A stretch of DNA of 64,000 nt from Neoechinorhynchus agilis (GCA_051530055.1 CM121343.1:6232389-6296388); one strand, 5' to 3'; positions 14,901 to 60,506 are shown, numbered from the stretch's first letter. Numbers and translations: made by a program. Notes: generated from the letters alone by a model not told the origin.

Positions 14901-17778
14901 AAAGTTTCCATTTGAGATCGTTCGACAAATCCCAGACGAGAAATTAATAGGTATGTGATTTTAATCAGACAAATGACAGCTCAGTGGAAATGTTTGAAAA
15001 AAATAAGGATATTCTTAGTCATTTAAAGTGTTAAAAAATGACAAAATGTACTTTGAGGTTTCAATTTTATTTGGTTATGATTCCATTTGGCAGATTTCTT
15101 GGAATCTTGTTGATTTATCTATTAATTAGAGAAGTGTTTAGAAGTCTACATCCGCGGTCGAAATAATTATTTCTATTAAAGACGTTCTGCGAACCTCGTC
15201 GGGTTTTGTTTACTAACAAACTGAGATGATGAACCCTTTAAGAGGTTCGTAGAACGTCTTTTTAATCGAAATAATTATTTCGACCGAGGGTGTAGACTTC
15301 TAACCATAATAATTCTCTAATCACATTCCCTCCGGTATCTCACATATCGACAATTAGAGAAGTAACTTATCGTTAGCATCGGCCACTTTTTCAATTTTAT
15401 TTGGTTATGATTCCATTTGGCAGATTTCTCGGAATCTTGTTGATTTATCTATTAATTAGAGAAGTGTTTAGAAGTCTACATCCGCGGTCGAAATAATTAT
15501 TTCGATCAAAGACGTTCTGCGAACCTCGTCGGGTTTTGTTTACTAACAAACTGAGATGATGAACCCTTTAAGAGGTTCGTAGAACGTCTTTTTAATCGAA
15601 ATAATTATTTCGACCGAGGGTGTAGACTTCTAACCATAATAATTCTCTAATCACATTCCCTCCGGTATCTCACATATCGACAATTAGAGAAGTAACTTAT
15701 CGTTAGCATCGGCCACTTTTTCAATTTTATTTGGTTATGATTCCATTTGGCAGATTTCTCGGAATCTTGTTGATTTATCTATTAATTAGAGAAGTCTACA
15801 TCCGCGGTCGAAATAATTATTTCGATTAAAGACGTTCTGCGAACCTCGTCGGGTTTTGTTTACTAACAAACTGAGATGATGAACCCTTTAAGAGGTTCGT
15901 AGAACGTCTTTTTAATCGAAATAATTATTTCGACCGAGGGTGTAGACTTCTAACCATAATAATTCTCTAATCACATTCCCTCCGGTATCTCACATATCGA
16001 CAATTAGAGAAGTAACTTATCGTTAGCATCGGCCACTTTTTCAATTTTATTTGGTTATGATTCCATTTGGCAGATTTCTCGGAATCTTGTTGATTTATCT
16101 ATTAATTAGAGAAGTGTTTAGAAGTCTACATCCGCGGTCGAAATAATTATTTCGATTAAAGACGTTCTGCGAACCTCGTCGGGTTTTGTTCTAAAATACT
16201 GGATGATGAACCCGACGAGGTTCGTAGAACGTCTTTTTAATCGAAATAATTATTTCGACCGAGGGTGTAGACTTCTAACCATAATAATTCTCTAATCACA
16301 TTCCCTCCGGTATCTCACATATCGACAATTAGAGAAGTAACTTATCGTAAGCATCGGTCACTTTTTCAATTTTATTTGGTTATGATTCCATTTGGCAGAT
16401 TTCTCGGAATCTTGTTGATTTATCTATTAATTAGAGAAGTGTTTAGAAGTCTACATCCGCGGTCGAAATAATTATTTCGATCAAAGACGTTCTGCGAACC
16501 TCGTCGGGTTTTGTTTACTAACAAACTGAGATGATGAACCCTTTAAGAGGTTCGTAGAACGTCTTTTTAATCGAAATAATTATTTCGACCGAGGGTGTAG
16601 ACTTCTAACCATAATAATTCTCTAATCACATTCCCTCCGGTATCTCACATATCGACAATTAGAGAAATAACTTATCGTAAGCATCGGTCACTTTGAGAAG
16701 CTTAAAGCAATGCTCAATGGCGTAAAAGATACGTTATATCAGAAGTGGTCATTTTATAATCTGCCTTTATTACTTAGACAAAGGGTTTAGTTCTCTTTAT
16801 CGTTGCATTAAAGAAAGCACAAAAAGATTAAATCTCATCATAAAGGTGACAATGTACAAAAAATTATAGATTTAATTTTTAAGGTCGCCAAAACAATTAA
16901 TTTAGCTAAATTTGAATGATTCAATTATACGATATTAAAAAATTACCGATATATTATTTTTCTTTATAGAACGCATAGTTTGAGAAATTAAAAGCTTTAT
17001 CTATAAGGATTTTTGTCAGTATTTTGCCAATGAGCGTTCTCGATGGCGTTATTTAGGTTCCGTCGCCGAGGCTCTCTTTGATTATGAAGCACGAAACTCA
17101 GATGAGATTTCAATGAGGAAAGGTGATAGGATTGTGATTCGTGAAACTCGATTGGCTGATCCTGGTTGGTGGAAAGGTCGTAACGATGGTAGCATTGGAG
17201 TGTTTCCTGCTGGATACGTGCAAATCTTTTTGCAAGATTTATCCCAAGCTTCAAGTAGCAATGATCCAAGATTGATACACGTGGACGAAGCTGTGAACGA
17301 CGACAATCCATATCCACAATGTGGATTAAGCCTTAAAAATTCAGAACTTAGTTTTGAGCAGACAAGTAACAATAAAGCAACGCCTGATACGTTCTCCGAT
17401 TCCTTGATGCCATCTTCGGAAGCAGGTGAAACCTGTCAGAAGCGAATTAACGAGCAAGATGGAGTCTTGAGCAGCAATGCGCATTCTTCGCCGAGTTCCA
17501 ATTCGACAAACAACGTTAGGAGAAAAGAAGATGAAATGAGATGCCAAAGGAAGATAATTGACGACTCTACCGAGCGATTGTTGAAGACCGAAGAGCAAGT
17601 TTGTGAATTGAGGAAGGAAGTAATGGATATTAAAGAACGAATGTCTAAAATGGAAAGTAAATTCCAAATGAAGATTGAACAATTAAAATCGTCGATAGAG
17701 TTCCTGGTCGGCAGTTGGCGCGCGTCGTCAGAAACTAGTCCAACAAATGAAAAAATGAACAAAGAAGAGGGCAAATAA
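11943..17778 (+). CDS. CIN85/CD2AP-like adaptor: N-terminal extension, 3 SH3 domains (first two degenerate), C-terminal coiled coil
   Basis: Canonical SH3 GSVAEALFDYEARNSDEISMRKGDRIVI...ADPGWWKGRNDGSIGVFPAGYVQ (17057-17225). SH3-like segments at about 13060-13215 and 13530-13619 joined to 14854-14950, with splice phases consistent. Terminal coiled coil. The 5' exons and start codon are less certain. Confidence 0.72.
15059..16694. repeat. Intronic tandem array, 5 copies of a 320-330 bp unit, each containing an approx. 197 bp fold-back (family A)
   Basis: Unit start TCAATTTTATTTGG at 15061, 15391, 15721, 16041 and 16366. In copy 1, arm GAAGTCTACATCCGCGGTCGAAATAATTATT... (15141) is the reverse complement of ...ATAATTATTTCGACCGAGGGTGTAGACTTC (ends 15300). 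Confidence 0.96.
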
Positions 17779-18945
17779 GTTAAAACATTATACGTGTGTA
17801 CTTGTTTGATTTCGGTAAATATATCACGTCGCACAAAAATGCCGATCATCCATTTTTAATGAGTTTTGCTCATTAACTCAAATGCTCATTAGGTCCATAA
17901 ATTGACTCAAATGCCATAATTAGAAGAAAAAATATTAATGGAACGTCATTGTAGGAATAGATTTATAAACAGCTTTTAAATAAAAAATAAATCATTTCCC
18001 AAAACTTCTTTAAATCATAAAGAAAAATGATTTAATTTGACTAATATTTCGTCCTCTACGTGAAATATCTTTCTAATTAATTTTTTTTATTTTGCCTGAT
18101 CAGAAACAATCTATAACATCTTATTTAAGAGATAGGATGGGTAATTTAAAGAAATCATCGATTTATAAATTCTTAAGATTCTTATAATCTCACATCTTCA
18201 TTGAGCGGCAGTGCTTTTATAGGTCAATGCACACAATTTGCAGAAAACAACTAAAAATGATTTATAACTCTGTAGAAAAGCAAATGAACACGAGTGCGAC
18301 GATATACTTTAAAAATGAGAAAAAGATTAGAAAGCAATCCGATGCGTTTAGGGGGTTAATAAAATTCTAAGCTAAAATAGAAAAAAATTGATATTCAAGT
18401 AGTTACGCAATTTTTAGTAAAAGAGAAGATTTCGTTTTTTATTTCTGCGATAAATCAGATAATTACGTATAATTTTTTTATCCAAACAACGAAAAGAAAA
18501 TAAGCAATTGTTCGTGCCAGATTAGATTGGCGATCAAATTCCGCAATTGTGATTTTTAAAGTATTATTAAAAATTATTTTTTTGACCCTGAAATTAGAAG
18601 AACAGCAATGGACGAAATTAAATTTCCGCGATAATTAATAAAAAAAGATACCGATTTCGATAGGTTAAACGTTCAAAGTGAGTTGAAAGTGAAGAGGTTA
18701 AATTTAGTAACGTGTATAAAAACCGTGAGTACAGATTGAGAAGGGCTTTTTCTCTTGAAGAAAAGGTTCAGGCGATATTAACAAAGTGAACTTCTTGCAT
18801 ATGCAAATGGACACTCCCATAGCGGCTAAACGAAGATCGTTGTTTTCTCGAGTAGAATTTGATTGAAACAATATTATGGCATAGTGTGAAATTTAAACTT
18901 GCAATGGTTTTAGGTCATCTATAATATACGACGACCGGGTTCATA

Positions 18946-21122: not shown

Positions 21123-24100
21123 ATGAGACTTAAAAAGTTAACTATAACGAACTTTACTTCGTATCAAGATTCGGGCGGTTCCGTGGATTTCGATCCACGT
21201 CTGAACGTCATCGTCGGTAGGAATGGGTCGGGTAAGAGCAACATTTTCCGGGCGGTCGAGTTCGTCCTGTGTGACTCAAAAAGTGAAGATGGAAAACTGG
21301 CTTTTCTCAACACAAACGTGAATCCAGAACTTGGAATGTCGGTGGAAATGATATTGTCATCTCGTGGAGAAGATACGATTTCTGGTGGCGAGACCAGCGT
21401 TAAGAGAGTCATGCAAGGCAATAAAGATCAATATTACGTTAATGGTAAACTAGCATCCAAAATGCAAGTGGCCAATCTATTACAGGCTTCTGGTCTTAGT
21501 GCTTCTAATCCTTATTTTATCGTTAAACAAAGCAAAATTAATGAAGTCGCTACTGCTCCTGATTCCATGCGGTTGCAGATATTCTATGATGTCATTGGTG
21601 CCAGTTATTACGAAAGGAAACGGGATGAAACTACTAATATAATGGCAAGCGCTGGGATGACCATTCAAAGGATATGCCACTTATCATCGACGTCATTACT
21701 GTTGATTTTGTTAAAGGGTTTTGTCATCCTGAAATTATTCGCTGCAAAATAGAAAATTAAAGTTTTTGCTTAATCATTGGTTCGAACTTATGCCGGTATG
21801 AAAGTATCATTGGGATGTTCTTTCAAAAGTTTTATCCTTTTTCTAAGCAGAATAAAAGCAAGGTTTATGGAGAGAAATCTGTTAATTATTGGGAATTTTT
21901 GCTGAAAAAAAGAAGCGTCGCTCACAATGATTTGAACGGTTAACTTATTAACTTTTTTTTAATTTTTGCGTTTATTTGCGAACGTGGTAACGAGTGCATT
22001 TTTGTGATTTTTTTATATCCCTACGGATCTCTTAAATTTATTTCCACATTACTAGAACACTTGTTTATAAAATTCTTTCAAAAAATTTTGCGTTTATACT
22101 AAGAACTATAATTTCGTTAGCTCATTATTTTTTAAATTCCCATTTTTGGAATTTATTTTTCATCCAAATGGTTTTATTTATTGGATATTTGTAATTTTCA
22201 CTCATCTTACATACGCCCTCAAGATTTCTTTTCTCAATGAAGCTGACTGTCTATTGTGGCTGCAGTAAAGCGCCGTTGATGTGTGGCTTAAATCAAAACT
22301 TCGAGTTTATAGATAATAGTCTCAAAACCTATGAAAATGATAAGGATGAATTTATAAAGTACTTAAAATTAGAAGCAGATAAGGGTTATTTATTGACGTC
22401 GATTGTGGACTCAGAGATTGACGATGCGCAGTCTCGGTTGGATCGTTTGTTTGACAGTCGCGAGGAGCTTGCAAAAGCATCGGATAAAATAAACCATGAG
22501 ATGTGTAATTTATCGTCGCTGGTCGCTGAGAAGGAACAAAAGCTTCGTTCATTACAACTTGAATTGGAAGGTTACCAGAACGAGCAACGAGTTTTGGCTC
22601 AAGGCTCTCGTTCATTGTACGAGCAGCAGTGTAATTTGGATGCAATGCTGGAAACTGCTATCAAAAGAATTGACTCTTATGAAAGCAACCACATCATGAA
22701 GATTGCGGAATGTGACAAAAAAATTGAGAACATAAAACAGAGTATTATGAAATCAAAAGAAGAAATTGAACATTTAGACGTATCTCTAAAGGGGAAAATG
22801 GACCTAAAAGTTAAGGCCGAACATCGACTTAAAACGCTATTCGATTCGGGTATTGATGTCTCAAAAGCTAGCGATGCTAAGGAAATAAAGGATTCGGTTG
22901 GAAAGGAGATGCGAGCTAAAAAGGCAGAGATGCGTAAATTTGAGAATCAAATTAAAAACGAAAACCGCAGTTTAAATGAGATGAAGGATTCTCTACCGGA
23001 GAAGGAGACGGGAATTGAAGCTGCCCTTGCGGATCTCAGCGCTCAATATACGATACTAGAGGATTGGAAAATGAAGTTTGCCAAAGCTCGTCAAAATGTC
23101 ATAGAAGCTACGGAGGAGAAGCAAAAAGTTCTTCATAACGAAACCGCAGCTAAAGTAAAGATAAATGAAATCAAGGATCACCTGCGTGATTTACGTGTTC
23201 AGTTGGCGCGATGGGTTGGTGAAAGGGTCGTCCATGGTGCTGATTGCATGCAAGAGATGATTTCGTCTTTAAAGAAGTCTAAGAAGCATCTAGAATTGGT
23301 TGCTGGTTATAGAGGTCTATTAATTGACATTATATCGACGGAAAAAGTGTTTTATTCCGCCATAGAAGTCACAGCCCGTGGTCGGTTATTTTCCCACATA
23401 GTCGATACCGACAAGAACGCTGCTGCTTTAGTCCATGAATACAATTTGCGGAAATACGGTGGAGTAGTCAACATTGTACCATTGAATAAAGTCGTACGAA
23501 CAGACGCACTGTCACTAATAGCGGCATGTAAGCAATCCAAATATCTTAAGTTTCCACTTTTTTCCAAGATCCGATGCCCAAAAGACGTTGAAGCCGCCGT
23601 GCAGCACATACTTGGACGATATGTATTGACGAACAATTTCTTTAAAGGAACCCAGGAAGCTATAGATTATGGTGTCAAATGCGTTTCAATCGAAGGAGAT
23701 CGCATGACTGAACCTGGCTTCTTAGACGGTGGTTTCATCGATCCAAGGAATTCAAAAATAGCCGCTCGAGAGCGATATTTAGCTCTGAATCAAACGCTAA
23801 AGGAACTGGAACTTGACTTGACTCAAATGGACGAGAGACTGAATGCTGTCGATGCTCGTTTAAACGTGGTAACGTGTGAGATGACGGATATGTCTACTAA
23901 CGTGAACAATGAAGAGAAAATGTACCAAAAATTGAATATCGAGTACAGGACGCTACAAAAAGGGTTTATCGAATTGAAAGAAAAAATTAAAGTTGGCGAA
24001 AAAAAGATAAAATCTCTCGAAGCGACTAAATTAGAATTGAGCCAAGTCTTAAATATTCTGTCTTCTGAGCTATCTGCTCCAGATTCTGAATTAGAAATTA

Positions 24101-26071
24101 TATCTGGAAAGAATATTAGATTAATGAACGATGATATTGAACGAATTACTGAGAAGAAGAAATTACTCGAAGGAAATCTTCTATCATTGATTGATTCAAT
24201 GGAACGTACCATTCTTGATAAGCATGCACTGTCCCAGAAAAGTTCAAAAAGCAGCGCAGAAGTAACTTTGGATAAATCGAAGATCGACATGCTTAAGGAG
24301 AATAAAAATGAACTTACAAAACGCATTCTAGAGCATGAAGATGATGTTAAGAAGATTTCAGATCGCATCCAACAGCAGAACTCTACAATCGAATCAGTAA
24401 CCCAAGAATTGCAGTCATTAAAGGAAAAAGAAGATTTTCTGAATGTGGACATTCAAAAAAGTCGAAGCGCGTTAGTCCACTGGTTTGTGATCCAATATTC
24501 ATTACTATTTGGATGGGTTTTTTAATTAGAAATTATTTTATGCCATGCTTAAAAGATGGAATTCGTAAATTGATTTTATAAAATGAAAATTACAGAAACT
24601 TTATCTATGAACGAAAACATAACCAGTACATCATCAAGATTATTTGTTGCACTAAAAACTTCCATGTCCTGTGTGTTCATTGCTTATCTTTATAATTGTC
24701 TTCTTTTAGAAAAATTAATTTATTCGTTCAACGCCTTCTTCATTCCCGGATTATCTTTACTTCCACAGTTGCTATTATTCCAAACGAAAAAAGCGCTTTC
24801 ACTTTCCGTAAAGAAGAAACAATACCTACAACAAAATATGTCAAATAGATCTTGTTAATTTTAGTTGACGCGAATAATAACTATCATACTAGGTGCTGGT
24901 GACCATAATCCCCGGATAAAACATATTTTGAATTGAGATATTTCGAAAAAGGAAGCCTAGATTTATCGATCATCCAACTGGTTTTTCTTGTTTGGTATTG
25001 TATGCCTCTAGTTCGCGTGTATTTTTAGATGACTGATGAGATGAGGCTTCCTCTTTCGAAATATCTCAATTCAAAATATGTTTTATTCGAGGAATACAAC
25101 TCTATCATCTTGAAGGATTTTTTGCAAGGGAGGAGGGTCCAGACAGATTCCCTTTTAGTGGTTAAACCTTATTAAAAAAATTTCGTTTGAAAAGTGTATC
25201 ACAAATTAGTGGAATATCAAAACTTTATGAAAAGGCAGCATTTTTACATGATCAAATCGAGAAATTGAATGGACGAAAAATAGAAATCGGCGTATCTACG
25301 AGTGATTCCAAAGAAAGGTGCAGTGGCATTCCTAGACATGAGTATTCAAAGAAAATTGACGAGATTAATCATGAGTTGGAGAAGTATAAGACATTGAACA
25401 AAAACGCGTTAGGAGATTATAAAGATTTTACTCTAAGACGCGAGGAACTTCGGAATCGATTTTGTCAGGCTGAAAGTGAAGGTATGGTAATTGACAACTT
25501 TTTAAAATTATCCGACGAAGCTAAAGCTCGGGTATTGAATGATAAATTTCAAGAATTTAGCACTAAGTTTACAGCAATGTTTCAAAAATTAATACCGACC
25601 GGTCATGCCAGTTTAACAGTGATGAAGATTTTAAATGCTACTTCAAGTGCGAGTACTAGTACAGCGGTTGAAGAAGGTAGTATTCCAAGTCAGATACCAA
25701 GTAATTGCGTGGGACTCGGGATTCATGTACGATTTAATCTAGATCAGAAATATGTTAGGAGTATCGAGGAATTATCGGGAGGACAAAAAACCGTTGTTGC
25801 AGTTGCGATAATACTTGCCCTTCAACAAGTGAATCCTGCTCCTTTTTACATTTTCGATGAAATCGACCAAGCATTGGATGATGAGTACAGAAGTGCAGTT
25901 ACAACTTTAATACATGAAATGTCTCGAACATCTCAGTGTCTTACAACAACATTCCGACCTGAACTTATTAATCTTGCTGACAAGTTGATTGGTGTTTCTT
26001 TTCAGAACAAAACAAGTTCCATGCGGGATATCGAACGAAAAACCGCTCTTGAGTTCGTTTCAAAAACTTAA
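21123..26071 (+). CDS. SMC3: Cohesin subunit SMC3 (divergent), 3 large exons
   Basis: Walker A GRNGSGKSNIF, NPYFIVKQSKI, hinge GYRGLLIDII...EVTARGRLFSHIVDTD...EGDRMTEPGFLDGG, signature LSGGQKTVVAVAIILALQQVNPAPFYIFDEIDQALD, TTTFRPEL. About 1,200 aa in total. Confidence 0.93.
24899..25095. mobile_element. Fold-back element, family B, in an SMC3 intron
   Basis: 24911-24958 is the reverse complement of 25044-25093 (AGGCTTCCTCTTTCGAAATATCTCAATTCAAAATATGTTTTAT). The end GGTGACCATAATCCCCGG resembles the sequences at 33842 and 55531. Confidence 0.85.
25030..25068 (+). ncRNA. Minimal type I hammerhead ribozyme motif with intact core
   Basis: TGA-CTGATGA-GATGAGG(CTT)CCTCTTTC-GAAA-TAT-C-TCA: 3-bp stem I, AUC cleavage triplet, palindromic AUAU stem III, imperfect stem II. 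Confidence 0.72.
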
Positions 26072-28206: not shown

Positions 28207-28451
28207 GTGCCAGTGGAAATATCATTAAATATTGTCTTCTTTTTAACTACATTGGACTATAGTATGCAAAAAGATATAAGCTTAAAAGCGGTCTCAAAAT
28301 ACATGAAATGGAATCTTCGGTAAAACGAAATTTGAAACTAAGCGGACGAATCAATCCTAGAGCAAAAGATAATTGTCGCTTGAAGGGATTTGTTTCGTTG
28401 AACCAATTCACCATCGTATAAATATGCAGCAAAATATCCATTTTTTCGATT

Positions 28452-28493
28452 GTCCTCATTTTATTTCGGAGTTTTATTCCTTCTTCAGAGTCC
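28452..28493 (-). ncRNA. Degenerate hammerhead core at the 3' end of the Penelope-like relic
   Basis: Minus strand reads CTGAAGA-A-GGA(ATAAAAC)TCC-GAAA-TAAAATG. Stem I has only 2 bp and position 17 is G, so it is probably inactive. Confidence 0.5.
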
Positions 28494-28499
28494 TGAAAG

Positions 28500-29620
28500 C
28501 ACGTGATCTACATAGGTAGTCAGAATAGTTCAGTGAAGAAGTCAACTGGTCCACTTGGTTAAGCACGATAACGTGTCGAACGTTGACCGTCTCCTATGTA
28601 CGATCACCTCACTCATTCCCACTTTTCATCTCGTTCAAAATAGGAATCGCTATTGGTTTCCTTCTCTCTCGAGCGTCCGCTAGTCAATTCCGCTCGGCGT
28701 TGAAGTCTCTCAAGTTCCCGCGTTCACAACCTTAACCGCGGTCCTAAGATGAGTAAATCCTTACAGTCCTGCGCATCGCTGTATAGAATGCTTGCTTCAT
28801 CATCCAAGGATGGTAAGAATCTCGATGCATGATTATGGCTTTCTTGCAAGGTTTACGGTACCATTCAAATGTGTCGTCTTCCTTAAATCACAAACTGGGG
28901 AAGTGGTCCGTCAGGATGCCCCTTGTCATTCATAGCCGCCCGGTTGTATCTATTGTATTGAGCCTTTGTTCCAATTCATCCACTTCAGATGTTTCCCTGT
29001 AGGACAGTAGCACGTCGTCCACATACATGAGGTAAATCCGTTTTTCGGTAACTGGAGCAAGTCTGTTCCCCATAATCAAAACCTTCGAACTTGCCGATGG
29101 ATCCTATTTCCAAATCTGAAGGGATTACATTTGAAGATCAAGCGTATGAGATATGTCTCTATATCTCAAAACCATGAAGGTTGAGCTCTCCTTTCGTCTC
29201 GGCAATCTTTTCTCCGTGACTCTTAGCGCAGTATCATTGTCCACGTTTGTGTATAAGGCGTCAAAATCGAATGACATTATTTGGCAGTTATTTAAATTCT
29301 CTCGTCAGGAATGCAAGGATTCAGTCCGTTCCTTCCTCGCGTTTTAGATATGCCCTTGTCGTTTGGGGGAGTGGATTTAGAGTCATAGCTAACAGCTTTG
29401 AAACCCAATAACCAGGACCGTTCACAACCTAATTGATCAGCCTGCACTTCATTAATGATCCAGTTGCCCCTTGGATGGAAATCCCTGGCGTCGTATTCGT
29501 TTTGATTATTGGGTACATTAAATATGAATGATATGCGCATGTCGCCGATTTTCCTCGACCCGAGGAGCGAACTACTTTCTTGGATTCATTCCCTTATAAA
29601 TGTCCTGAAGGAGATAACGA
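28500..29620 (-). mobile_element. Decayed Penelope-like element reverse transcriptase relic
   Basis: Minus-strand peptides in the order expected for PLE RT: SFDFDALYTNVD, LIMGNRLAP, YLMYVDDVLL, WYRKPCKKAIIMHRDSYHP. Multiple stops and frameshifts. No GIY-YIG domain seen. Confidence 0.8.
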
Positions 29621-32246: not shown

Positions 32247-32308
32247 TTCTACTTTAATATAAAAATAGTCTATTTATTTTTTTGAAACTTTAAGTTTTAT
32301 TTAACCAA

Positions 32309-32815
32309 AAGCAAGCATACATAATTTATAGTTTCTTCGACGCTCCTATTCATCGGCGCTGGCCAAAATGCTAGCCGCATTGCCCCGCTGCACCGTAATG
32401 CTTATTTTTTGCGCCAAGAACGACGTCGATCTTGGCTCTCCAGTCGCTGCGTAACATTCTAGAACCCACTAATCTTTGTAGATTAGATGGAAGACGCCCT
32501 GATGGCGTGACCGTATTTCCTTGGCGGGAGGGAAAATGTTTGTTGTGAGATGCAACGTGTGTGGACACGTTGGCAAACTCCAACATCGACCACCCGAAAA
32601 AAGGTCCAGGAGGAGCGGCGACGGCAGCAGAGGATCGGAAATGCTCAAAATACAGGGAGCTAATCCGAAATTACCATTTTGTCCCCTTCGGTGTGGAAAA
32701 GTACCTTGGGAGGGTCGGCACTGGCCCTCCTGAAGGACTTGGGGAAACGAATTTACGCAGCGACTGGAGAGCCAAGATCGACGTCGTTCTTGGCGCAAAA
32801 AATAAGCATTGCGGT
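32309..32815. mobile_element. 5'-truncated, internally inverted CRE-clade fragment (lineage B)
   Basis: 32309-32454 is the 3' end on the minus strand (VQRGNAASILAS). 32455-32815 is the RLE region on the plus strand ([24 protein letters not shown]). 32392-32454 and 32753-32815 are a 63 bp inverted repeat. Confidence 0.85.
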
Positions 32816-33074
32816 CTATTTATTTGTGCAAATAAATCACAATGCGCACACTTGGAAAAACAGCAAAGAATTAAGAAAATAAGCCGAAAACGTTAACTTT
32901 CCATTTATCAAAATAATAAACAATATTAAAAAGATACACAGAGTTTTAAAGCCAATCGATTATTTAACTAGCTCAAATGTGAAGCGACACACAATACCTA
33001 ATATTTTCTATAAAGGATTAAAATCGAAAATAATAGAAGGTAGTTTGAATTGTCGTTTTGTCAGCTATCGGGCT

Positions 33075-33830
33075 AATAATAACACGTTTTTATTACCACA
33101 CACCCAAGCAAGCACGGGAACCACGTATCTTTGGATTCGTGCTGTTTGATTGAGATTGTAATTCGGAATGAGCTGCAAGTCGTCGCATGTGCATGAGTCT
33201 TTCCTCCGATTCAGGCCGTAGACTCATGGGTTGATTGTACGATGGCGAAAATGATTTTTTATATAGTGTGGTGCGCGGGAGAGGCGGATTGAATCTGTTC
33301 GGACATCGTGTATTTCGGACGGGTTCCCTTGGCGAGATGAACGGCAGAAATTTAGATGGAAGGGAACGCAGGGAGGTCATGTATTTATCGAAGAATTTGG
33401 AAAGGTGTTCTTCGATTGGTGGGAGGTCCTTGGAGCCAATTTTGCAGGCTCGTTTATTTAGGGAGGAAAGCAAGCGCAGTCGATGGGTGGATAAATTGCA
33501 AAAGGTTGGGTATGCATATGAGATTGCGGGGACCACAACGGACCAATAGAAATGTGCTAGATCGCGTGGGCTGACTCCGAGCAAACGCAAGAGCTTGATT
33601 AAATGCAATTTAGCAGTGGCTTTTGCTACGACGCCATTAATGTGGATGTCCCATTTGAGGTTGTGTTGGAAGATTAGGCTCAGAATGCGAAGCGATGTGG
33701 AGCGTTGGATATCGAGAGGGAGCGGTGGAATATCAGTCCTAGGTTTTCGAAGCGACGGAATAAGTTCATAAGATTTGGAGAAATTAATTAAGAGTTGGTG
33801 GGTGGTGCAAAAATCTTTAAGAACTTTTGA
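33075..33830 (-). mobile_element. 5'-truncated LINE fragment (L2/Crack/CR1-like RT thumb region)
   Basis: FCTTHQLLINFSKS...ILSLIFQHNLKWDIHINGVVAKATAKLHLIKLLR...FYWSVVVPAISYAYPTF. Ends near an AATAAA at about 33090. Confidence 0.75.
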
Positions 33831-33832
33831 AG

Positions 33833-44681: not shown

Positions 44682-44824
44682 CTCTTGTGGCGATTCACAC
44701 CCCGAGAGTCAGTTTTATTTTGTAATATTTCGGGGGCCATACCCACCTTTTCAAACATTGTCATTGTTTGCAAGTTTTTTTCGGAAAATAAAACTGACTC
44801 TCGGGGTGTGAATCGCCACAAGAG
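44682..44824. mobile_element. Fold-back element, family B-related, degenerate hammerhead on the minus strand
   Basis: Arms CTCTTGTGGCGATTCACACCCCGAGAGTCAGTTTTATTTT and its complement. Minus strand reads TTGAAAA-G-GTGGG(TATGG)CCCCC-GAAA-TATT. Spacer shared with 33915. Confidence 0.75.
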
Positions 44825-45120
44825 AATTACTATTCACCCGAATGTTATCATGAAAGATATAAAAAAGAATTTTAGTTTAAACACAATATTATTGTCTCAA
44901 TGGTTTCGGTATACTTAACCGCTTTATTTTAAATTTTTACGTTTTGATTTCAAGGCGGTTTAGAAATTAATTACATTCAATCTATACTTTTCTTCTAAAG
45001 AACCTTCATAAAATTGTTTTGATTCCACTCATCAATTTTCTTTTTGAACTTTATGGTTCCTTTAAGCGATTATCCGTTTTTAGATTAATAAAAGCTAAAA
45101 GTCCTTCGAGATCATAGAGT

Positions 45121-45297
45121 TGGAGATGTAGTGATCACTATTTCGGATAATTTTTTATTGAGATAATTCGTGAGGAAGCCTCGAATATAAAATAACAAAA
45201 ACATTTTGGATGACTGATAAGGTGAGTCTTCCTCTTTCAAAATATCTTAACTCAATGAAATATTTTCTATCCGGCGATTATGATTACCACATCTCCA
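45121..45297. mobile_element. Fold-back element, family B, degenerate hammerhead on the plus strand
   Basis: Ends TGGAGATGT / ACATCTCCA. GATGACTGATAAGGTGAGTCTTCCTCTTTCAAAATATC (45209-45246) aligns with 25028-25065. Confidence 0.82.
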
Positions 45298-45637: not shown

Positions 45638-48216
45638 TTGATTGTAATACTATCTTCTTTAATTTTCTCATGTATTCTATCGATTCATGTGATTGAATCG
45701 CGATTGATACAGTCTATAACAACTCGCGTTTACAACTACACTTATTATAGTGATCGAATACGAAACATTACTCCGTATTTTGTTAAAAGACGAACTTTTT
45801 TATGTCCTTTCATCCTCGTTCAAAGCGGTACTCAATGCTGCTTAATTGCCGCTCTCATACTCAATGGTTTGGTTATTTCTTTTTTATATACTCAAATAAT
45901 ATAGCATTCATTAGTGATTCTTCTAACATTAACAACGGTGGTTACATTGGAGCCGACATTTCCTGGAAAGGATGGTGGATCTAAACAACGAATACCGTTT
46001 GTTGTACTTGAGAAAACTAAATTAAGCCGGGTTTGATTTCTATATGCATAAGGATCTTTCTTGAAAAACCTTAAGCAATATGACTTTCTATACAATCCAA
46101 GCTTGTATCTTTGTATCTATGGATTACTTGTAACTCATTTAACAATTGAAGTCGCGCATCAGTCAACAATAAGGTATGTTTTTTTTGCATTTTGAAATTC
46201 AGGAAAGCATTTGATTAGTTTGTGCGCTCCTCTAAATTTGCATCTCATTGAAAGATTTAAAAAGATTCAGTTGTTTCTCCGGAAAGTTCAAATAAAATTC
46301 CTGTTTCATCTTAGAAGTGTTATTTAGACCTTCACCCGGTAAAGATTTTTTTTCGATTAAAAGCGTTTCGAACCTCGTCGGGTTCATCATCAATTTGTTA
46401 GTTAACGTCTTAATTTAAAAAAATTACCGGGTGAAGACCTAAATAACGCTCTAATCATATACCCCAGTACCTCACATATCGACATTTTGCAACAATTAAT
46501 TTAGATGCGATATCCTAAGAACAATTTCTCATTTTCTTCAACTCATTCTCATTTCATCAATGAGTTATTTATTTACTCGCAATGGATACTCACGATTGAA
46601 AAACTGCTTATTACCGGACGAAACATGTTACCATCCTTCAAGCTCTTATAAAGTGGCAAGTACATCAATATTGTAGAAAAATAATATTTGTAATTTTTAG
46701 ATTCCTCACGTAATAATATTAGCGTGCATTTTAGCTGATAAATTATTAGGCTCGATTTTTCTCTTTATTTTCCAAAAAAGGATCACTGTAAGCAACGTAA
46801 AATCTATTAATGGGCATACATTAGAAGTGGAATTGTCAAATTTAAATATTAACTGTAAAAAATTTAAATTTGAAGCTGGATGGTGTTTATGGACAAAATG
46901 TTGTGATATCTCTTTCTTTCAAATACGTCCGTTCTATCCATTCGCTGTAAGATTAATTATTTTTTCATTATGGTATTGTTCCAAATGTAGGATTCGTCAA
47001 ATGGGAATCGAGTAAGTATCAGATTGGTGCTGGAAAATCACGATAGTTGGAATCGTAAGCTGTATTCGATGCTATTGGATGAAAGGATTACAAGGTTCTT
47101 GAAATATGCAATAAAGTTCTCGATATAGTATCCATACGCTAAGGTTAACAATCAGTATCCCGATTCAAGAGTCAATAATTACGAAACTGGATAAAACATG
47201 CAAATATCGATGTATCATTGTCGCATTAGGATCATCAATACAGAAATATGCGCTTTTGCTAGAATTGATAAAAAGGTTTTTATATGGCTCTCTTGTTTAA
47301 ATTTTGTAATATTTGGGCGATTTGTGAAATGTATCGTATTTGGCTCTATTCCTAAATAATAAGATCGGCGCAACTACACTCATATGTGACATTTAAAACA
47401 ATAATTGTGAAGCGATTGAAACATTACTAATGAATTGTGTGTATGCACCGATATTTGATACATTTCTTTTGTTGAATGAAATTCATATTACGAAAATATC
47501 GCTTATGATGAAACCTATTGATAGTAATCCCTTGATGTTTCCAAATGGCACCCGTGTGACTATGTATTGGATATGCACTCTTGATGAGTATGAGACGTAT
47601 AAATGGCCTGGCCGATTATTCCACCAGTCATCTCAATTTGGACGCGACGTTAATCTAAGGATTTTGATGACAAAAGGATGGGATTGTCATTCGGTAAATA
47701 TTTGTTCCTCTTGAATATGAATTTTTAAACGAGAAATTGACTTTCCAACAAAAGTTCTAGAAGGCAAAATAAATCACTCAAGAGAGTTTTATTAAATTGT
47801 TCTTTTGAAAAGAACATTAGACACTTGTTCCTTATTGTTTTTATAAGTGATTAGATTGTCAGTAAAGATTAATTAGCGAGTAGAGAACACATTTGAAATT
47901 TAATACATAAAATGTTTTTCTTACTCGATTGCATTAATCGCTTCCTGGATGATGATGATAGGCTCGTGTAATAACAACAATACGGCCGTTTAATTCATTG
48001 GAGTTTGTGTCCTATGGCAAACCGTGCTGGGTCAAAGAGTTTAATGGTGATTTTTTAAAGGAACATTTATACTCAAGACCTGGATCATCATACTCTGCGG
48101 TTCATGTATTTGTGTCGGACCACGGATCTCGGCGTAACTTAGGCCTTTACTACGATCAGATGTGCAACAAAGATGGGAAAATATGTGGATATAAAGTAGA
48201 GATTGGTTGGATGTGA
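45638..48216 (+). other. Possible lineage-specific small genes; no model established
   Basis: Several short ORFs with hydrophobic or Cys/Trp-containing segments and plausible GT/AG boundaries, but no recognisable domain. Confidence 0.25.
46311..46483. mobile_element. Fold-back element, family A, hammerhead core on the minus strand
   Basis: Arms TTCACCCGGTAA / TTACCGGGTGAA. Minus strand reads TTGATGA-T-GAACC(CGACGA)GGTTC-GAAAC-GC. The tail CTCACATATCGACA is shared with the 15 kb array. Confidence 0.82.
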
Positions 48217-53862: not shown

Positions 53863-56684
53863 TCAAAAGCGGTGATATTTGAGTCCATCATTAGAAGAAG
53901 GGTTGCTACCACCTGATTTTTTATCATCCACCACCGCCGCCGCCGCCCCAATGCCACGTCCAAGCTTCTTTTCACTCGACGCCAACGACGTACGTAAGGG
54001 ATTTACAAAGTATCCATTTTCAAGTGTTATTTTGGATCCGGCTTCTACACTCAATCTTGAAACGTTGTCATATATCGATGAGGACCGAGAGATAGTATTT
54101 CCGATGGGGATATCTTCGGTGAAACTCGTGCTCACGATGGAAGTAATTCTTTTTTGATCCTCACCGATTCCGAGGTCTCCATTTAAGCTAATCTCACTTC
54201 CACCAAACGCGTGTAACCCAACCACCGACGTGTCTCTACTCATATCATCATCTATGAACATCTCTGTAGATGAATCGTCGTCATCGTTGTTATTATTGCT
54301 AAAATCATCGCCTCTGCTGTTCGTTTTCAATTTGTTATTATTGGCCACGAACGCATTCGCATTCCGTAATGTAACCGTCGCGAGTGCCGTAATTGTTGAA
54401 GGCGTCTGTGGACGTGCCGTATCCGGTAAGAGCTTATGCCGCCGGAGTTTACTCAGTGCCCGTTGGAGCTTCTGAATGGTTATGTCCTCTTTGACTCCAC
54501 AAAATGAAGCGGATAAATGTGTACTGATAAACTCAAGAAAACGATCGATGGACCTCATTTGCAGAATTCGTTCTAGCAACAACAACAATGAAAAAGGTAA
54601 TCAGAAAAAACAACAACTTACTTTCATGAATGCGCATTATGTTATAAGCCATCGCCAGCAGGACGTGGTCACCCCGTGCCAGAAAAACATCCCATACTCG
54701 AAGTGTCAATGAAAATGGCAGCTAGGTTTTTTCAAAATTAATAGAAATGTAATGATTTAACCTTTTTTCTTCTTCAAAGAATACTAACCGCGTCAATGTA
54801 ACAGTTTATGAGCCATTTGAAAAGGTACATTGTACTTGAAACTGCTAATGTATCCTACAACTAAGATTTGACGAAGAGTTACGTTTAAAGCGCATTTGTG
54901 ATCGATTCACAATCGCGAAAGCACTGAGAATGCCATTTAAAAGTCAAGTCGCATTGGGATATGATCACGATTTGGTAAAAATAGCCCATGTCCATCGAGA
55001 GAAATGGGAAAAATAGAACAACGACTTAAAATGTTTGTTTATGGCCTTGAAAATTTGAAGGAGTAGGCACAATCTTGCGCCTTTATCCTGAAACTCTTTC
55101 AATTTTTCAAAGCCATAAACAAACCGCCCGAAACGTCGATATTGTCCGAATCCTCAATTTAAGAGAATCAGGTCCTAAAATAATTTCAAGATCAATAAGC
55201 TTGTGTGTAATTTTAGATCTACTTTTTATTTTATAGAAAAGAATTTTTAAGAAATCCACGACTAATAAGATCAAAGATTTGAAAATACAGTCGAACTTCA
55301 ATTATCCGGATATATTTTTGTCATCTGCGACTTCCCGCTGGAATTTAACGAACAAATCACATTGGGTTTTCGGTTACAACGAGGCAGCTAACGTGATAGC
55401 GACAGCCGAGGAAAGAGAGAAGCTCCAATCTTGCGGACGGTGGTTTGTAAAACCTAGAAAAGTTTAAAAAGCAACTCTCGTATCCGAAAATAGTCCTGGA
55501 CAAACGACGTTATTTTCGTTCGAGAGTTCTGGTGATCATAATCCCTGCTACAAGATATTTTATTGATTATCCGGGACTGTGATCACCGCAACTCCAATTG
55601 GTTGTGTTCATCATAGAATTCAAAAATCACCCAATATCTTACCAATCTTCTTTTAACTTTCGGAAGAAGCCTTCTTAGTATGGTGTTGAAGCTTTGCTCG
55701 AATTCGCCAAATTTCGGGAAATTCCTGAGAAAAAATCTTTCAAGTGAATATTGTGGAGCTGACATTAACTGCGTCAAACCCCAGAAAGCATCCTAGAATT
55801 TAATTATTTTTTAAGACAAAAAGCAAACTCAAATTACCTCTTCTGCTTCAAAATACATAACCAAAAGAGCGGCTATATTATTCATTCCTTGACAATATCC
55901 CAGATTTCGATTAAATACGGAATAAGTAATAAGCACATGAAAAAGCATTTGTTGTCTAGGTATTTTATTGTCAAATAAGACAGTATTCCATCACTACGAA
56001 TCTAACCTAAAATTATATCTTTCTCTGAAATAAACATTTTCTCTGAAAGTTCGATTGACGTCTAAATCAATCTGTCGAATATCGACTGATTCCTTTCTTG
56101 CCTTATCGCGAATAAACTACGTAATCAGAGACTTAATCTGGAAGAATCACGCTTCGGACATACGGCGTAGTAACCGACCACGCTGTGTTCAGTGTCGTGT
56201 TTGTGTTTGAGTGCATCGACCATTAATAATTTGCGCCATACTTTTGATCTGAGGCTATCGGGAATTCCTTTAAAAATCCTAAGAATAAACTAAAAACACG
56301 CAGTTAAAGTTTGTTCATTAGGCGGAACGCGATTGAACCTTTTCAGAGCGTAAAGATCTATCCCAGTTACGCAACATTCTACTCCATTTCATCTCCCGTC
56401 GTCTTGCCTTGTCTTTGATTGCATCATCATCGGAAGATTGATAATCGGTGGTGACCGGAACAGTAGTCGCGGAATCTTTGGTCCGCAGGTTGCCGTTGAT
56501 CAAAAATCCATAGCGATCAATTCGTTGAAGATCCAGACTCGGTAAAGCAATAGACTGACTAATCGACGAATCCGCTGACGAACCCTTAAACTAACAAATC
56601 ACCAGTCCGGTCTCAACCTATTAATCTTACTCTGTCGTATCTCGCGACTATATCCAAGCTTTCGTTCTTGATACCGCTTTTCAT
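53863..56684 (-). CDS. USP6NL: TBC-domain Rab GAP, USP6NL/RN-tre-like
   Basis: IVARYDR|G, IDRYGFL, EMKWSRML, GIPDSLRSKVW, IRQIDLDVNRTFR, LGYCQGM, DAFW, LPFSLTLRVWDVFL. Low-complexity C-terminus. Confidence 0.9.
55523..55595. mobile_element. Short fold-back retaining only family B outer ends, in a USP6NL intron
   Basis: GAGTTCTGGTGATCATAATCCC...TTATCCGGGACTGTGATCACCGCAACTC. Matches the termini at 24899 and 45268-45288. Confidence 0.65.
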
Positions 56685-58228
56685 GTTCTTCCTTCGATCG
56701 ATGAAGGATTCTAGACGGAGACAAACATAAAGAAATCATCCATCACACCTTCGACTAACACCCGCGCTCGCTCGCTCGCGAATGGATTAATCATTTTGCC
56801 GCCGCCGCCGCCGCCGTATGCGTGCACGTCTATGGCGGCGGCGGCCGCCACGTAGGCAGCAGACACGACGAAACCCGAATAGAATTGCAAAATCTATTTT
56901 GTATAAACGCTAAGCTTTTGCGTCTTCACGGTGCAAAGTACATAAAAAAACCCAGGATCAATGTGTGTGCCATACACGCACAAAGGAGTTACTGTAGCGA
57001 TGACGTATTACACTTAATACGGAAGAATCCACTGAGATTCCATGAGTGAAAAGGAATTTAATGACGTCAGTACGGACGTATTTGGGCTAAATTTCGGTGG
57101 TTTGTGGAGTGAGACGTGGGATGTTAAGGCTTTATCCACAACGGTGAGGGACACCGCGTAAATGTTTATTAAAAGTTAGACGTGCACTACTAGTGACTCA
57201 TTAAGAAAAATCAACACTTTGTTCAACTAAAACTGTTTTGTCTCGGTTCTTTTGAATTATCACTTAATATCCGGTAGTCGAGATGATTTTGCTGAATGGA
57301 ATCTCTTTTAGTCTAAATACCTCTTCCACAATTAATGAATTCACCTAAATTTGACACATTTAATTTTAGGTTTCTGTGTTCACGACTGCTTTCTACACAC
57401 AAATGAATTGTCGTGCTTTAACTCCCTTCCAGGTTCCAATGGTATAAAACTTTCAACCGTCTCGTTCTTTTTGTTAGTCCAATTTGCAACGGTGAAGAGC
57501 ACGATCGATTTTGTAATAACATTCAATTGCCAGCTATGACATTCGTACCCTTGAATTTTTGTTGTTATAACGCCTTGAAGCATCTTATCCTTTTTGTAAA
57601 GGTAATCTAATGATTTATTTTAAAGGCTTCTAAATGGAGAAGCCGTCGTTGTTCTATAATGCGAGTAGAATGGCTGTTAACCATGAAGTTCACTTCGCCG
57701 CAATATTCGAGAACATTTGGGAAAATTTCGTCTGATAAAAGTGAGGATATTTTTGAAAAAAACACGTTTGAATTAATTACTTTTTCCGTATTACACATGA
57801 GAGCTTTTTATTTACCTCTAAGGTTTGCTCAGTTGATGGATACGAAAAACGACTTTCACTGAGATTTGTTGTCAGTTGCCTCGATATGGCCGGCCGCTTG
57901 CAACTAAAGAACTTATGGAGTCAAGTCGTCATCCACTTTAATTGATTTTGTAAATTCCTGTAAATCCTGCATCTTGGCATCTATGGCGACGACGATCATG
58001 TAATTGGAATCATCGTGTCGAGATGGACAAAAGAGAAACTCTGAGTACTGGGTTTCCCCCGAACAAATTAATAACTAGATTTCCAACAAAGAACGTTTTC
58101 TGGGGAAATTATGCCCTTATCCAGCATTTGGCAATTCTCTGCAATCTCGTAGTTTGCTTATCCACTTTGGCAAGAACGAATACTGGCCTTTAGAATTAAT
58201 TAATATTTGTTAACATTCAATTGGTACC

Positions 58229-59620
58229 GATGACGCACAACCAAAGAGGATGCAATTCGGCGGAATTGAAGAAACTCAGTGATGAATTCGGTCGCCTCGG
58301 GAGGTATCTGAGGAGACCAAAGGATTCACAACGGCATGGTTCAGGGTATTTATCGTTTCCCTTCCTAAAGTCGATCGACTTTGTACTCAAATAAAACCGT
58401 ATATTGATAACTTCATTTACACTTGATAAACGCAACAGCCTAAGCCACGTACACGCCAGAGGAAAATCAAAAGCTGATTCGTGGCAAAAGTGGCGAAGTT
58501 TGTACATTCCGTAGTTGTGCCGAGATGGACAAGAGTTCTTAATCCACGCTCGAGGGTTAGAATCCGTTACCGTCGATGACGCACAACCAAAGAGGGTGCA
58601 ATTCGGCGGAATTGAAGAAACTCAGTGATGAATTCGGTCGCCTCGGGAGGTATCTGAGGAGACCAAAGGATTCACAACGGCATGGTTCAGGGTATTTATC
58701 GTTTCCCTTCCTAAAGTCGATCGACTTTGTACTCAAATAAAACCGTATATTGATAACTTCATTTACACTTGATAAACGCAACAGCCTAAGCCACGTACAC
58801 GCCAGAGGAAAATCAAAAGCTGATTCGTGGCAAAAGTGGCGAAGTTTGTACATTCCGTAGTTGTGCCGAGATGGACAAGAGTTCTTAATCCACGCTCGAG
58901 GGTTAGAATCCGTTACCGTCGATGACGCACAACCAAAGAGGATGCAATTCGGCGGAATTGAAGAAACTCAGTGATGAATTCGGTCGCCTCGGGAGGTATC
59001 TGAGGAGACCAAAGGATTCACAACGGCATGGTTCAGGGTATTTATCGTTTCCCTTCCTAAAGTCGATCGACTTTGTACTCAAATAAAACCGTATATTGAT
59101 AACTTCATTTACACTTGATAAACGCAACAGCCTAAGCTACGTACACGCCAGAGGAAAATCAAAAGCGATTCGTGGCAAAAGTGGCGAAGTTTGTACATTC
59201 CGTAGTTGTGCCGAGATGGACAAGAGTTCTTAATCCACGCTCGAGGGTTAGAATCCGTTACCGTCGATGACCACAACCAAAGAGGTGCAATTCGGCGGAA
59301 TTGAAGAAACTCAGTGATGAATCCGGTCGCCTCGGGAGGTATCTGAGGAGACCAAAGGATTCACAACGGCATGGTTCAGGGTATTTATCGTTTCCCTTCC
59401 TAAAGTCGATCGACTTTGTACTCAAATAAAACCGTATATTGATAACTTCATTTACACTTGATAAACGCAACAGCCAAAGCTACGTACACGCCAGAGGAAA
59501 ATCAAAAGCTGACTCTTGGCAAAAGTGGCGAAGTTTGTACATTCCGTAATTGTGCCGAGGTGGACAATAGTTCTTAATCCACGCTCGAGGGTTAGAATCC
59601 GTTACCGTCGATGACGCACA
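58229..59620. repeat. Tandem array, about 346 bp unit, 4 copies
   Basis: The unit start GATGAC recurs at 58229, 58575, 58921, 59266 and 59610. Confidence 0.97.
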
Positions 59621-60286
59621 ATTCGAATCTATTCAATTCGAATCTGTTATTCTGATCATGCTGCGTCATTATTGAATTTAACTGTCCGCAAGGATAGTTC
59701 TTTCGTGCTTGTTTTGCGACGTATTCAGAGTCAGAAATTATTGTGCCGTCCATAGTTTTCAACTTTGTGCACTTTGGAGCGGGGATTGGTGGGCCATGGG
59801 ATATTCAGCGCTGACACCGATACGATAAATCGGTTGGCGTATTGGATTTTCGAGAAGGGCCTTCGTTCTGCGGCTTTCTTCCGCAAGAATATGAGCATTT
59901 CAATCGAGCAGGAAAATGATGCCAGCATAATGGGTTGGCTGGAGCTTTGATTTGAGTGTATTTAATAATTTGAATTTAAGAAAATGTTTCGATTTTAAAT
60001 TTTATTTAGTAGAATTGCTTCTTTCACTCGACCTTGAAAGCGATTTTTATTAGGATTGACCTATGAATCCTTAGATTTGTGAATAGGTTCGCACTGATAG
60101 CAAGAACGAACGAGTCGAAAGCGATTATCGATCACAAAAGTGGTACCAATAATAGAAAATATCAATATTTGAGATTTCACGCTCTCTTTGCATCGATGAT
60201 TTTTTCTACTTTTCGTGAAATTCTCCGTAGTTTTAACTTTCGTTCTAAAACTCTTTTATGTTTCAAGATTGAATTGTTCATAAAGT

Positions 60287-60506
60287 GGTTGTTTTATGGC
60301 GGAGAAATTAAAATGATTTTACTTTTTAAAATCTGATTGGTTTCGTAGGCACAATCTTGTGCGTCTTCTGATCAAGATTGCTTGTGAACTCACATATTTA
60401 AAAATTTACAAGCAATCTTGATCAGAAGGCGTACAAGATTGTGCCTCCGAAACCAATCAGATTTTAAAAAGTAAAATCATTTTAATTTCTCCGCCAGAAA
60501 ACAACC
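60287..60506. mobile_element. Long fold-back element (family D), arms of about 105 bp
   Basis: GGTTGTTTT..GGCGGAGAAATTAAAATGATTTTACTTTTTAAAATCTGATTGGTTTCG.AGGCACAATCTTG is mirrored on the right. A partial relative GTAGGCACAATCTTG lies at about 55064. Confidence 0.88.

Follow-up and report, generated by a model that had tools for sequence, protein, structure and literature searches.

Hammerhead-bearing fold-backs in an acanthocephalan genome as probable insertion scars of Penelope-like elements

A 64-kb window of the genome of Neoechinorhynchus agilis (GCA_051530055.1 CM121343.1:6232389-6296388, the whole stretch of DNA analyzed here) hosts a population of short palindromes, many of them built around a minimal hammerhead ribozyme, and raises the question of what such fold-backs are and how they came into being. 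The host is an acanthocephalan, with rotifers as its sister group, and the window contains animal DNA with coding pieces of a myosin tail, ENTH, SMC3, Ufd2/U-box, an amino-acid permease, and ELP1. We consider it highly probable that the fold-backs are scars, each left by a single abortive retrotransposition event of the machinery of Penelope-like elements (PLEs) and made from a copied RNA of the junction between the pseudo-long terminal repeat (pLTR) and the start of the open reading frame (ORF). An original prediction, made from the sequence of this window, had proposed that the palindromes are derived from PLEs and are not miniature inverted-repeat transposable elements (MITEs) of DNA transposons. 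Both proposals are supported: the minimal hammerhead signature, the head-to-head 5'-truncated arms, a one-sided tail, target-site duplications (TSDs) of 12-13 bp, and an ORF start in the ribozyme point to PLEs, and the lack of a fixed short TSD, the junctions varying by copy, and the one-sidedness of the extension speak against MITEs.

All of the ~14 short palindromes predicted in families A to D were recovered by a repeat search, with arms of 32-103 nucleotides (nt) and a complementarity of 79-100%. Self-BLAST linked copies inside family A and inside family B and found no link between families. The fold-backs and related features of the window, including three that had been missed before, are as follows.

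15059 to 16694 (plus): family A, tandem array of 330 bp x 5, one fold-back insertion with its flanks; arm spans 15135-15306, 15465-15636, 15790-15956, 16115-16281, and 16440-16611
Array unit 1 (layout the same in all units): arms 15135-15180 and 15261-15306; decayed hammerhead 15221-15260; one-sided tail 15317-15352; TSD of 12 nt, AATTAGAGAAGT, at 15124 and 15352
24899 to 25122 (unstranded): family B fold-back inside an SMC3 intron; arm span 24906-25096; intact-core hammerhead in the right arm, decayed one in the left arm; tail-like extension 25102-25122
33830 to 34035 (minus): family B fold-back; arm span 33830-34006; perfect minimal hammerhead 33881-33915 (minus); tail 34007-34035
34037 to 34172 (unstranded): family A fold-back; arm span 34037-34172; both arms cut off inside the hammerhead, CUGANGA box gone
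36577 to 36799 (plus): family C fold-back; arm span 36577-36761; hammerhead 36679-36714 (plus); truncated left arm retaining GAAAAUU; third partial copy 36776-36799
44682 to 44860 (minus): family B fold-back with perfect 40-nt arms; arm span 44682-44824; decayed hammerhead 44722-44755 (minus); right-only tail 44844-44860
45097 to 45295 (plus): family B fold-back; arm span ~45121-45295; hammerhead 45212-45248 (plus); left arm truncated in stem II; left-only tail 45097-45117
46311 to 46484 (minus): family A fold-back; arm span 46316-46450; hammerhead 46360-46393 (minus); right-only tail 46451-46484
55033 to 55124 (unstranded): short family D-like fold-back without hammerhead core, missed before; it has GGCACAATCTTG and the end ...GCCATAAACAAAC in common with family D
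55523 to 55600 (unstranded): family B fold-back; arm span ~55523-55600; both arms truncated 3' of the cleavage site, hammerhead gone
60247 to 60519 (unstranded): family D fold-back; arm span 60286-60507, with 103-nt arms 60286-60388 and 60405-60507; one-sided 26-nt extension 60260-60285; TSD of 13 nt, AAAACTCTTTTAT, at 60247 and 60507
40684 to 40794 (plus): single minimal hammerhead of a family "E", not a fold-back, missed before; motif 40684-40717, followed by its 3' end region
28247 to 29620 (minus): frame-broken reverse transcriptase (RT) relic, missed before; pieces FDFDALYTNV, YVDD, and YRKP...HP...K

The ribozyme provides the first part of the answer. Cervera and de la Pena (2014) described PLE minimal hammerheads as occurring in families with covarying helices, an extra nucleotide between A9 and 10.1, a conserved G10.1-C11.1 pair, a palindromic 15.2-16.2 stretch, and a helix I of very few base pairs (2 in D. 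virilis), all of these features lying outside the search descriptor of that paper (PMC4209133). In the window, the extra unpaired nucleotide between A9 and 10.1 is found in all five families (G in B and E, U in A, A in C and in the hammerhead of the relic), and stem II is closed by G10.1-C11.1 in all five, with helices differing by family: GCGAGG/CCUCGC in B, GUCUG/CAGAC in E, and further GAACC/GGUUC, GGUC/GGCC, and GGA/UCC. GAA is followed by a palindromic stem III devoid of loop 3, being ACGU in A, AUAU in B, and AAUU in C and E; the exception is the relic with a non-palindromic AUAA. Judged by these motifs, the ribozyme is the published PLE minimal hammerhead type, with all signatures present in five unrelated families except for the stem III of the relic. 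Shared with the metazoan PLE hammerheads are furthermore the type I topology, the 2-bp stem I, a stem II of 4-6 bp, a loop-less stem III implying dimer action, and the occurrence of many sequence families per genome, mostly as single copies. Families A to C descend from minimal type I hammerheads, and the core predicted for them (short stem I, CUGANGA, one extra nucleotide, stem II, GAAA, palindromic stem III) holds for the family ancestors, with a stem I of 2 bp, but is intact in only two of the 14 listed copies.

These two are 33881-33915 (minus), which is perfect (GA / CUGAAGA / G / GCGAGG-AUA-CCUCGC / GAA / AUAU / U | UC), and 25031-25067 (plus), which keeps both boxes and has an irregular stem II with an internal loop. 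By canonical rules, only these two could be active. The latter lies in sense orientation in the SMC3 intron, between the exon ORFs 22237-24525 and 25187-26071, and is, as a single minimal motif without a dimer partner, probably inert. Decay of the other copies ranges from one lesion at 36679-36714 (G12>A) over two at 45212-45248 (G8>A and G12>A) and at 46360-46393 (C3>U, ACGC replacing ACGU) to several at 24935-24971 (minus) in the left arm of the 24899 fold-back. An insertion breaks the CUGA box at 44722-44755, and in all five array copies both boxes contain inserted nucleotides (CUGA[GA]UGA or CUG[G]AUGA, and G[UA]GAACGU). The fold-backs at 34041 and 55523 are truncated beyond the core, the complete motif being absent. 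No hammerhead core was found in family D (60287), in which the search included a U3-A8 variant core, or in its relative at 55033. Family E reads CUGAAGC-G-GUCUG/CAUG/CAGAC-GAA-AAUU-C, with the lesion A9>C.

As proposed originally, the window was searched with a descriptor, made up of CUGANGA, 0-1 spacer nucleotides, stem II (4 bp or more), GAA, an A..U palindrome of 4 nt, and any base except G. The search gave one strict match versus none in 40 dinucleotide shuffles, and four matches with one core mismatch allowed versus a shuffle mean of 0.125. Three of the four are located in repeat elements (33913 (minus), 36681 (plus), and 40686 (plus)), the first two of them in fold-backs; the fourth, 10158 (minus) inside a myosin exon, is probably a chance match. 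The strict script missed 25031-25067 because of the internal loop in its stem II. An Rfam scan of the window found no hammerhead family, either at the gathering score or at E<=10, which is expected because the motifs are loop-less and minimal. Its microRNA hairpin matches (60314-60480, 44683-44823, and the array units) were all sub-threshold and were set aside as artefacts of the palindromes.

The second part of the answer is an ORF start overlapping the ribozyme. An AUG immediately precedes CUGA in family B, is contained in CUGAUGAUG in family A, and falls within loop II in families C and E. In seven arms from three families (all five B arms reaching the AUG, A at 46311, and C at 36601), the frame opened by this AUG is the only one free of stops up to the arm end, the other frames containing 1-6 stops. 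The peptides of family B are alike (MTDEMRLPLSKYLNSKYVL.., MIDKSRLPFSKYLNSKYVLSGDYGH.., MTDKVSLPLSKYLNSMKYFLSGDYDY.., and MTEEARIPREIFRINKIYNDRDYSH..), and the tails of this family keep the frame open, reading ..I[ILS][PLS]KDF... A CCGGG(G/U) string was also noted ~40-50 nt past the cut site in the otherwise unrelated families A, B, and E, read in the shared frame as ..PG.. or ..SG..; this string may represent a feature conserved at the start of the PLE ORF, either in the RNA or in the protein.

The ORF 33093-33926 (minus) was considered as a PLE ORF continuing from the hammerhead and was rejected, because its sequence past ~33800 resembles the C-terminal RT region of a long interspersed nuclear element (LINE) that merely abuts. 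This 5'-truncated LINE fragment, 33093-33830 (minus), carries the C-terminal RT region (..LKWDIHINGVVAKATAKLHLIKLLR..), is present in ~19 genomic copies by read depth, and abuts the 3' end of the family B element, with which it is in frame by chance in a 277-amino-acid ORF.

The third part is the anatomy of the arms. Aligned by their outer ends, they agree with the predicted architecture of head-to-head truncated copies: the 3' ends face outward, 5' truncation is unequal, and the 3' half of the hammerhead is mirrored in the shorter arm. Each family has one 3' terminus, with B ending ...CCGGGGAUUAUGAUCACCNCANCUCCAA and A ending ...CCGGGUGAAGRUCUAAAUAACACUUCUAA. The inner arm starts vary: some precede the ribozyme, and others fall within stem II, within GAAA, or beyond the cut site; the short right arm of the 33830-34035 fold-back, for example, begins at 33948 within GAAAUAUU. 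The junction is different in every fold-back of the window. Conserved sequence extends the terminus on one side only, namely on the left in 45121 and D and on the right in 44682, 46311, and the array units, forming one-sided tails of 17-21 nt (B 44682 and 45121), ~34-36 nt (A), and 26 nt (D). For the right-arm tail of 33833 (34007-34035), read boundaries give 29 nt.

Examination of the junctions for TSDs, as originally suggested, yielded direct repeats bracketing the unit including its tail in two cases, 12 nt in the A array (repeated in every unit) and 13 nt in D, a repeat of at least 12 nt being expected by chance in ~1.6% of random window pairs. In the other, older copies (24899, 33833/34041, 36601, 44682, 45121, 46311, and 55523), a clear TSD was not detected, and no fold-back of the window has a TA, TTA, or 8-bp TSD. 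The five array copies had been counted as separate elements. They are a single insertion duplicated as DNA with its flanks, not five events, because the TSD pair lies inside every unit and the core is doubly mutated.

Such an anatomy has precedents. Craig et al. (2021) reported PLEs to be heavily 5' truncated and accompanied by an inverted 5'-truncated copy, with a 30-40 bp tail often at one end only, and cite Evgen'ev and Arkhipova (2005) for pLTR insertion units (PMC8557442). In the Pen families of the rotifer Adineta vaga, head to head is the commonest inverted form, solo pLTRs occur, the pLTR holds the first 12 ORF codons (22 with the tail), and an optional 31-bp tail is found on one inverted pLTR (Arkhipova et al., 2013; PMC3846280). 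The TSDs of A. vaga PLEs measure 8-10 bp, and solo or inverted pLTRs without a coding body exist in rotifers. Common to these insertion units and the fold-backs are the head-to-head copies with outward 3' ends, the variable and heavy 5' truncation, the extension at one end, short TSDs, the first ORF codons within the pLTR, and the tail extending the frame. In contrast, both copies are cut to 35-130 nt here, giving units of 80-250 bp with a MITE-like look, the TSDs measure 12-13 bp, and a coding partner was not recovered. Regarding the hammerheads, Cervera and de la Pena (2014) found most motifs to be single and "probably related to truncated PLEs", with some paired on opposite strands 100-700 bp apart (PMC4209133). 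Here, the opposite-strand pairs are closer, one member is usually cut inside the ribozyme, and most window copies are mutated. The original prediction had left open whether this form has been described. It has, as inverted 5'-truncated pLTRs with tails (PMC8557442, PMC3846280) and as dual opposite-strand minimal hammerheads (PMC4209133), and it is not a new element class.

Copies beyond the window were assessed by laying public whole-genome shotgun reads of the same species label on 33600-34400 at a likeness of at least 80%, a setting which favors the conserved parts in mapping. Read depth was ~20 in the single-copy flank, ~3000 over the family B ribozyme, 1000-1800 over the right arm and tail, and ~480 over family A; these ratios correspond to ~150 family B and ~25 family A copies. 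The consensus ribozyme of the ~150 genomic family B copies is intact. Within the 35-nt ribozyme block, the sole variant above 10% lies in loop II (33899, 55%), and the adjoining 20 nt contain four sites at 27-85%, so that conservation of the core, originally proposed as a check, is borne out. Across the genome, the 34007-34035 tail and its arm are equally abundant, and 298 reads matching the truncated right arm run on upstream into intact hammerhead sequence. Loose ends of low agreement place the repeat boundaries at 33833 and 34035, and therefore the tail belongs to the repeat. RNA contigs of 0.4-1.2 kb from other loci contain copies of families A and B.

The same reads reveal at least seven strand-switch joints beyond arm ambiguity (33881/33974, 33900/33920, 33932/33932, 33937/33947, 33958/33965, 34105/34111, and 34106/34165), with 41 further ones; among the joints listed, each is covered by 11-35 reads, corresponding to ~1-3 loci. 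Symmetric opposite-strand joints, with positions summing to ~67837, were set aside as mapping ambiguity between the two arms. As the junctions are many, different, and individually low in copy number, the fold-back appears to be made afresh at each insertion and not copied as a unit.

A mechanism accounting for these observations can be put together with the in vitro work on the Anolis Poseidon PLE (PAc). Frangieh et al. [quoted passage not shown] In N. agilis, the copied RNA would be the pLTR/ORF-start junction of a PLE, or of an RNA borrowing that junction. The copied segment would be made up of a short leader rich in A/U, a minimal hammerhead of the PLE type, and 15-35 codons from the beginning of the ORF, ending at an internal reverse-transcription start 50-90 nt past the ribozyme cut site. 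A GIY-YIG endonuclease would cut both DNA strands with a stagger of ~12-13 bp, and each 3'-OH would prime complementary DNA (cDNA) from one of two adjacent start sites. Both cDNAs would terminate after 35-130 nt, the stopping point varying from event to event, and would then be joined head to head. We propose that a tail of 20-45 nt appears on one side when the two priming events use different start sites. Together, these steps, of which priming on both strands from two start sites is drawn from the anole PLE, would explain why the 3' ends face outward, why the tail is one-sided, and why the termini of B and D are AC-rich, and would account for the TSD and for the distances from cut site to end. 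The hammerhead would be a passenger, probably working in multimeric or protein-assisted form in the source transcripts, whereas in the fold-back it would be single, partly duplicated in antisense, and free to decay. PAc and the fold-backs share the ORF start in or beside the hammerhead and the AC-rich termini (B ends ...CACCACAUCUCCAAC, D ends ...CAGAAAACAACCA). They differ in the distance from cut site to end, which amounts here to 50-60 nt without and 80-95 nt with the tail, and the comparison is drawn on our side from sequence alone.

Several points weigh against this reading. Tail assignment is ambiguous for 24899, the left side of 33833, and 55523, clear TSDs are seen in only two of ~9 independent fold-backs, and family D has the architecture without a hammerhead. 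The read-depth profile was rejected as a test of 5' truncation and could not serve as one: at 80% likeness, the 3' region attracts fewer reads owing to its divergence between subfamilies, and the depth maximum accordingly falls on the ribozyme and not on the 3' end. The RNA data consist of contigs only, with no molecule ends reported at the 33882/33883 cleavage site. Furthermore, the architecture alone is not diagnostic of PLEs in this genome, because head-to-head pairing together with a 12-nt TSD is also seen in a LINE whose endonuclease is of the restriction-enzyme-like type. This non-LTR retrotransposon pair (32268-32826) is composed of a minus-strand 3' end (32309-32459) and a plus-strand 5'-truncated copy (32453-32815), bracketed by the 12-nt direct repeat GTCTATTTATTT at 32268 and 32814, with 29 extra A/T-rich nt on the left. 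Its motifs RT, CCHC, and RPD..D.K point to the endonuclease type, and its similarity to parts of the element at 36.9-41 kb ranges from 77 to 96%. The assignment to PLEs is therefore carried by the ribozyme signature and the ORF-start overlap.

The coding partner also counts here. A full-length PLE (RT and GIY-YIG) with the same 3' end or N-terminal peptide, which the original prediction had suggested to look for, was not recovered in the window or in database searches, and a word-based search with the family B N-terminal peptide gave no candidate. No PLE coding sequence stands beside any A-D fold-back in the window, the only coding link being the RT relic at 28.2-29.6 kb. Its RT pieces at 29.6-28.7 kb (minus) are followed by a degenerate hammerhead (28458-28490) in the style of the other families, which was counted in favor of PLEs, and by a 70-amino-acid ORF (28247-28459), and the whole of 28247-29620 (minus) is probably a partial-tandem PLE remnant. 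The RT motifs, which we take to be PLE-like, are the sole basis of this assignment. In Pfam, the relic yields a weak RVT_1 match only (E = 0.033), and a phmmer search of its 57-amino-acid YVDD piece versus 1.84 billion representatives returned five unrelated multi-stretch junk matches (NACHT, SWEET transporter, and others). Searching the ESM Atlas for the thumb piece produced no score >0.5, and PDB searches with two pieces of the relic gave nothing.

The rival that survives best, and which we regard as possible but unlikely, leaves the insertion mechanism as it is and differs only in the template: the source RNA would be a short non-autonomous element of ~130-250 nt (leader, hammerhead, and an RT-binding ORF-start stump), resembling a short interspersed nuclear element or a retrozyme and copied in trans by PLE enzymes. 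It would account for ~150 family B hammerhead copies being found, yet no PLE coding sequence beside any A, B, or C copy in the window, and for 33833 and 44682 starting at nearly the same point, ~28 nt upstream of the core. In the majority of genomic B copies, the ribozyme is preceded by a common A/T-rich stretch of at least 30 nt, conserved and non-coding in appearance (agreement 0.7 among 815 loose-end reads), which was counted in favor of this rival; a PLE pLTR, however, also looks A/T-rich upstream, and the sequence fits either source. Non-autonomous PLE derivatives are documented in the Chlamys elements (PMC8557442) and in animal retrozymes (bioRxiv 10.64898/2026.07.22.740005), and rotifer pLTRs alone can mobilize foreign sequence in trans (PMC3846280). 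On the other hand, an ORF start kept open across diverged copies suggests masters still encoding protein, the short size is partly a selection effect because short palindromes were picked, and no unit-length consensus can be built from one window. Retrozymes themselves, the non-LTR (animal) tandem hammerhead repeats which give circular RNAs and have been argued to be non-autonomous PLE derivatives (PMC7761336; bioRxiv 10.64898/2026.07.22.740005), are likewise small, non-coding, hammerhead-bearing, and PLE-related, and the 330-bp A array is superficially similar to them. They are arranged head to tail with one active ribozyme per unit, whereas the fold-backs are head-to-head pairs; the A array was rejected as a retrozyme, with a TSD pair in every unit and a core mutated in both boxes.

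Far less probable is the idea, raised in the original prediction, of the fold-back itself being a new retro-mobilized unit, transcribed and copied as a hairpin with the antisense arm masking the ribozyme. Masking is thermodynamically real in so far as the RNA of 33833-34035 folds at -95 kcal/mol (z = -13.9) and the full fold-back RNA has a predicted 56-bp duplex that would bury GAAAUAUU and the cleavage site, and the form is common to several families; we regard the masking as a by-product of the structure. A unit copied as such is contradicted by the differing window junctions, by the joints listed for ~150 B copies, none of which exceeds 35 reads at ~20x single-copy depth, and by the only multi-copy junction, that of the A array, having been amplified as DNA with its TSD and 90 nt of flank. 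Least credible are MITEs or palindromes from DNA-level replication or repair with chance hammerhead-like strings, for although the fold-backs share with MITEs the size of 80-250 bp, the inverted ends, and a strong hairpin, and match no Rfam hammerhead, the motif is enriched over shuffles, the PLE-specific extra nucleotide, G10.1-C11.1 pair, and palindromic stem III recur in unrelated families, conservation across the genome is highest in the ribozyme block, the arms are nested, unequal 5' truncations of one sequence and not terminal inverted repeats around a constant core, the tails are one-sided, and TA, TTA, or 8-bp TSDs are missing. We know of no DNA-transposon superfamily which 12-13 bp TSDs would fit.

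Some neighboring repeats were recorded along with the fold-backs. A near-full-length non-LTR retrotransposon at 36882-40000 (plus) contains an RVT_1 match (37821-38888), a CxCG..H..C knuckle downstream, an RPDG...D.K nuclease motif, and the C-terminal ..QRGNVASV... An inverted, second 5'-truncated 3' fragment of a family 96% related to it lies at 40795-40983 (minus), adjoined by the family E element 40684-40794 (plus), whose downstream sequence includes ..CACCGGGGAGG... A 346-bp x 4 tandem array (58228-59621) has a unit with a tRNA-like B-box (GGGTTAGAATCC) and the string GAAAC-UCA-(C/G)UGAUGA, and related pieces of 44-56 nt occur at 40355-40410 (in 40330-40440) and 60889-60944 (in 60870-60950). 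In the 278-bp x 4.5 tandem array at 1368-2619 (97% identity), no hammerhead-like motif was seen in the unit.

Taken as scars of PLE insertion, the fold-backs open no new mechanism or element class. They mimic MITEs or microRNA hairpins and will be misfiled by automatic pipelines, so that their recognition prevents false MITE, microRNA, or "new ribozyme class" calls in this genome. As a data set provided by nature, they agree with the model in which PLEs insert by way of two strands and two start sites, and they add an acanthocephalan, related to the rotifers, to the hosts of PLE-type minimal hammerheads. We tentatively suggest, as a further and more speculative step, that the short units are natural footprints of two-strand priming from two start sites, seen so far only in vitro for one lizard PLE, and, linked to this, that family B is a non-autonomous PLE parasite keeping the hammerhead and the ORF-start segment. 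RNA-truncation experiments on the lizard PLE place a protein-binding motif in this segment (PMC11167929). If the parasite proposal is true, family B would define the minimal cis-requirements for PLE mobilization in vivo, and if the footprints are what we suggest, hundreds of scars in a compact genome would make start sites, the ~12-13 bp endonuclease stagger, and cDNA stop points mappable from sequence alone.

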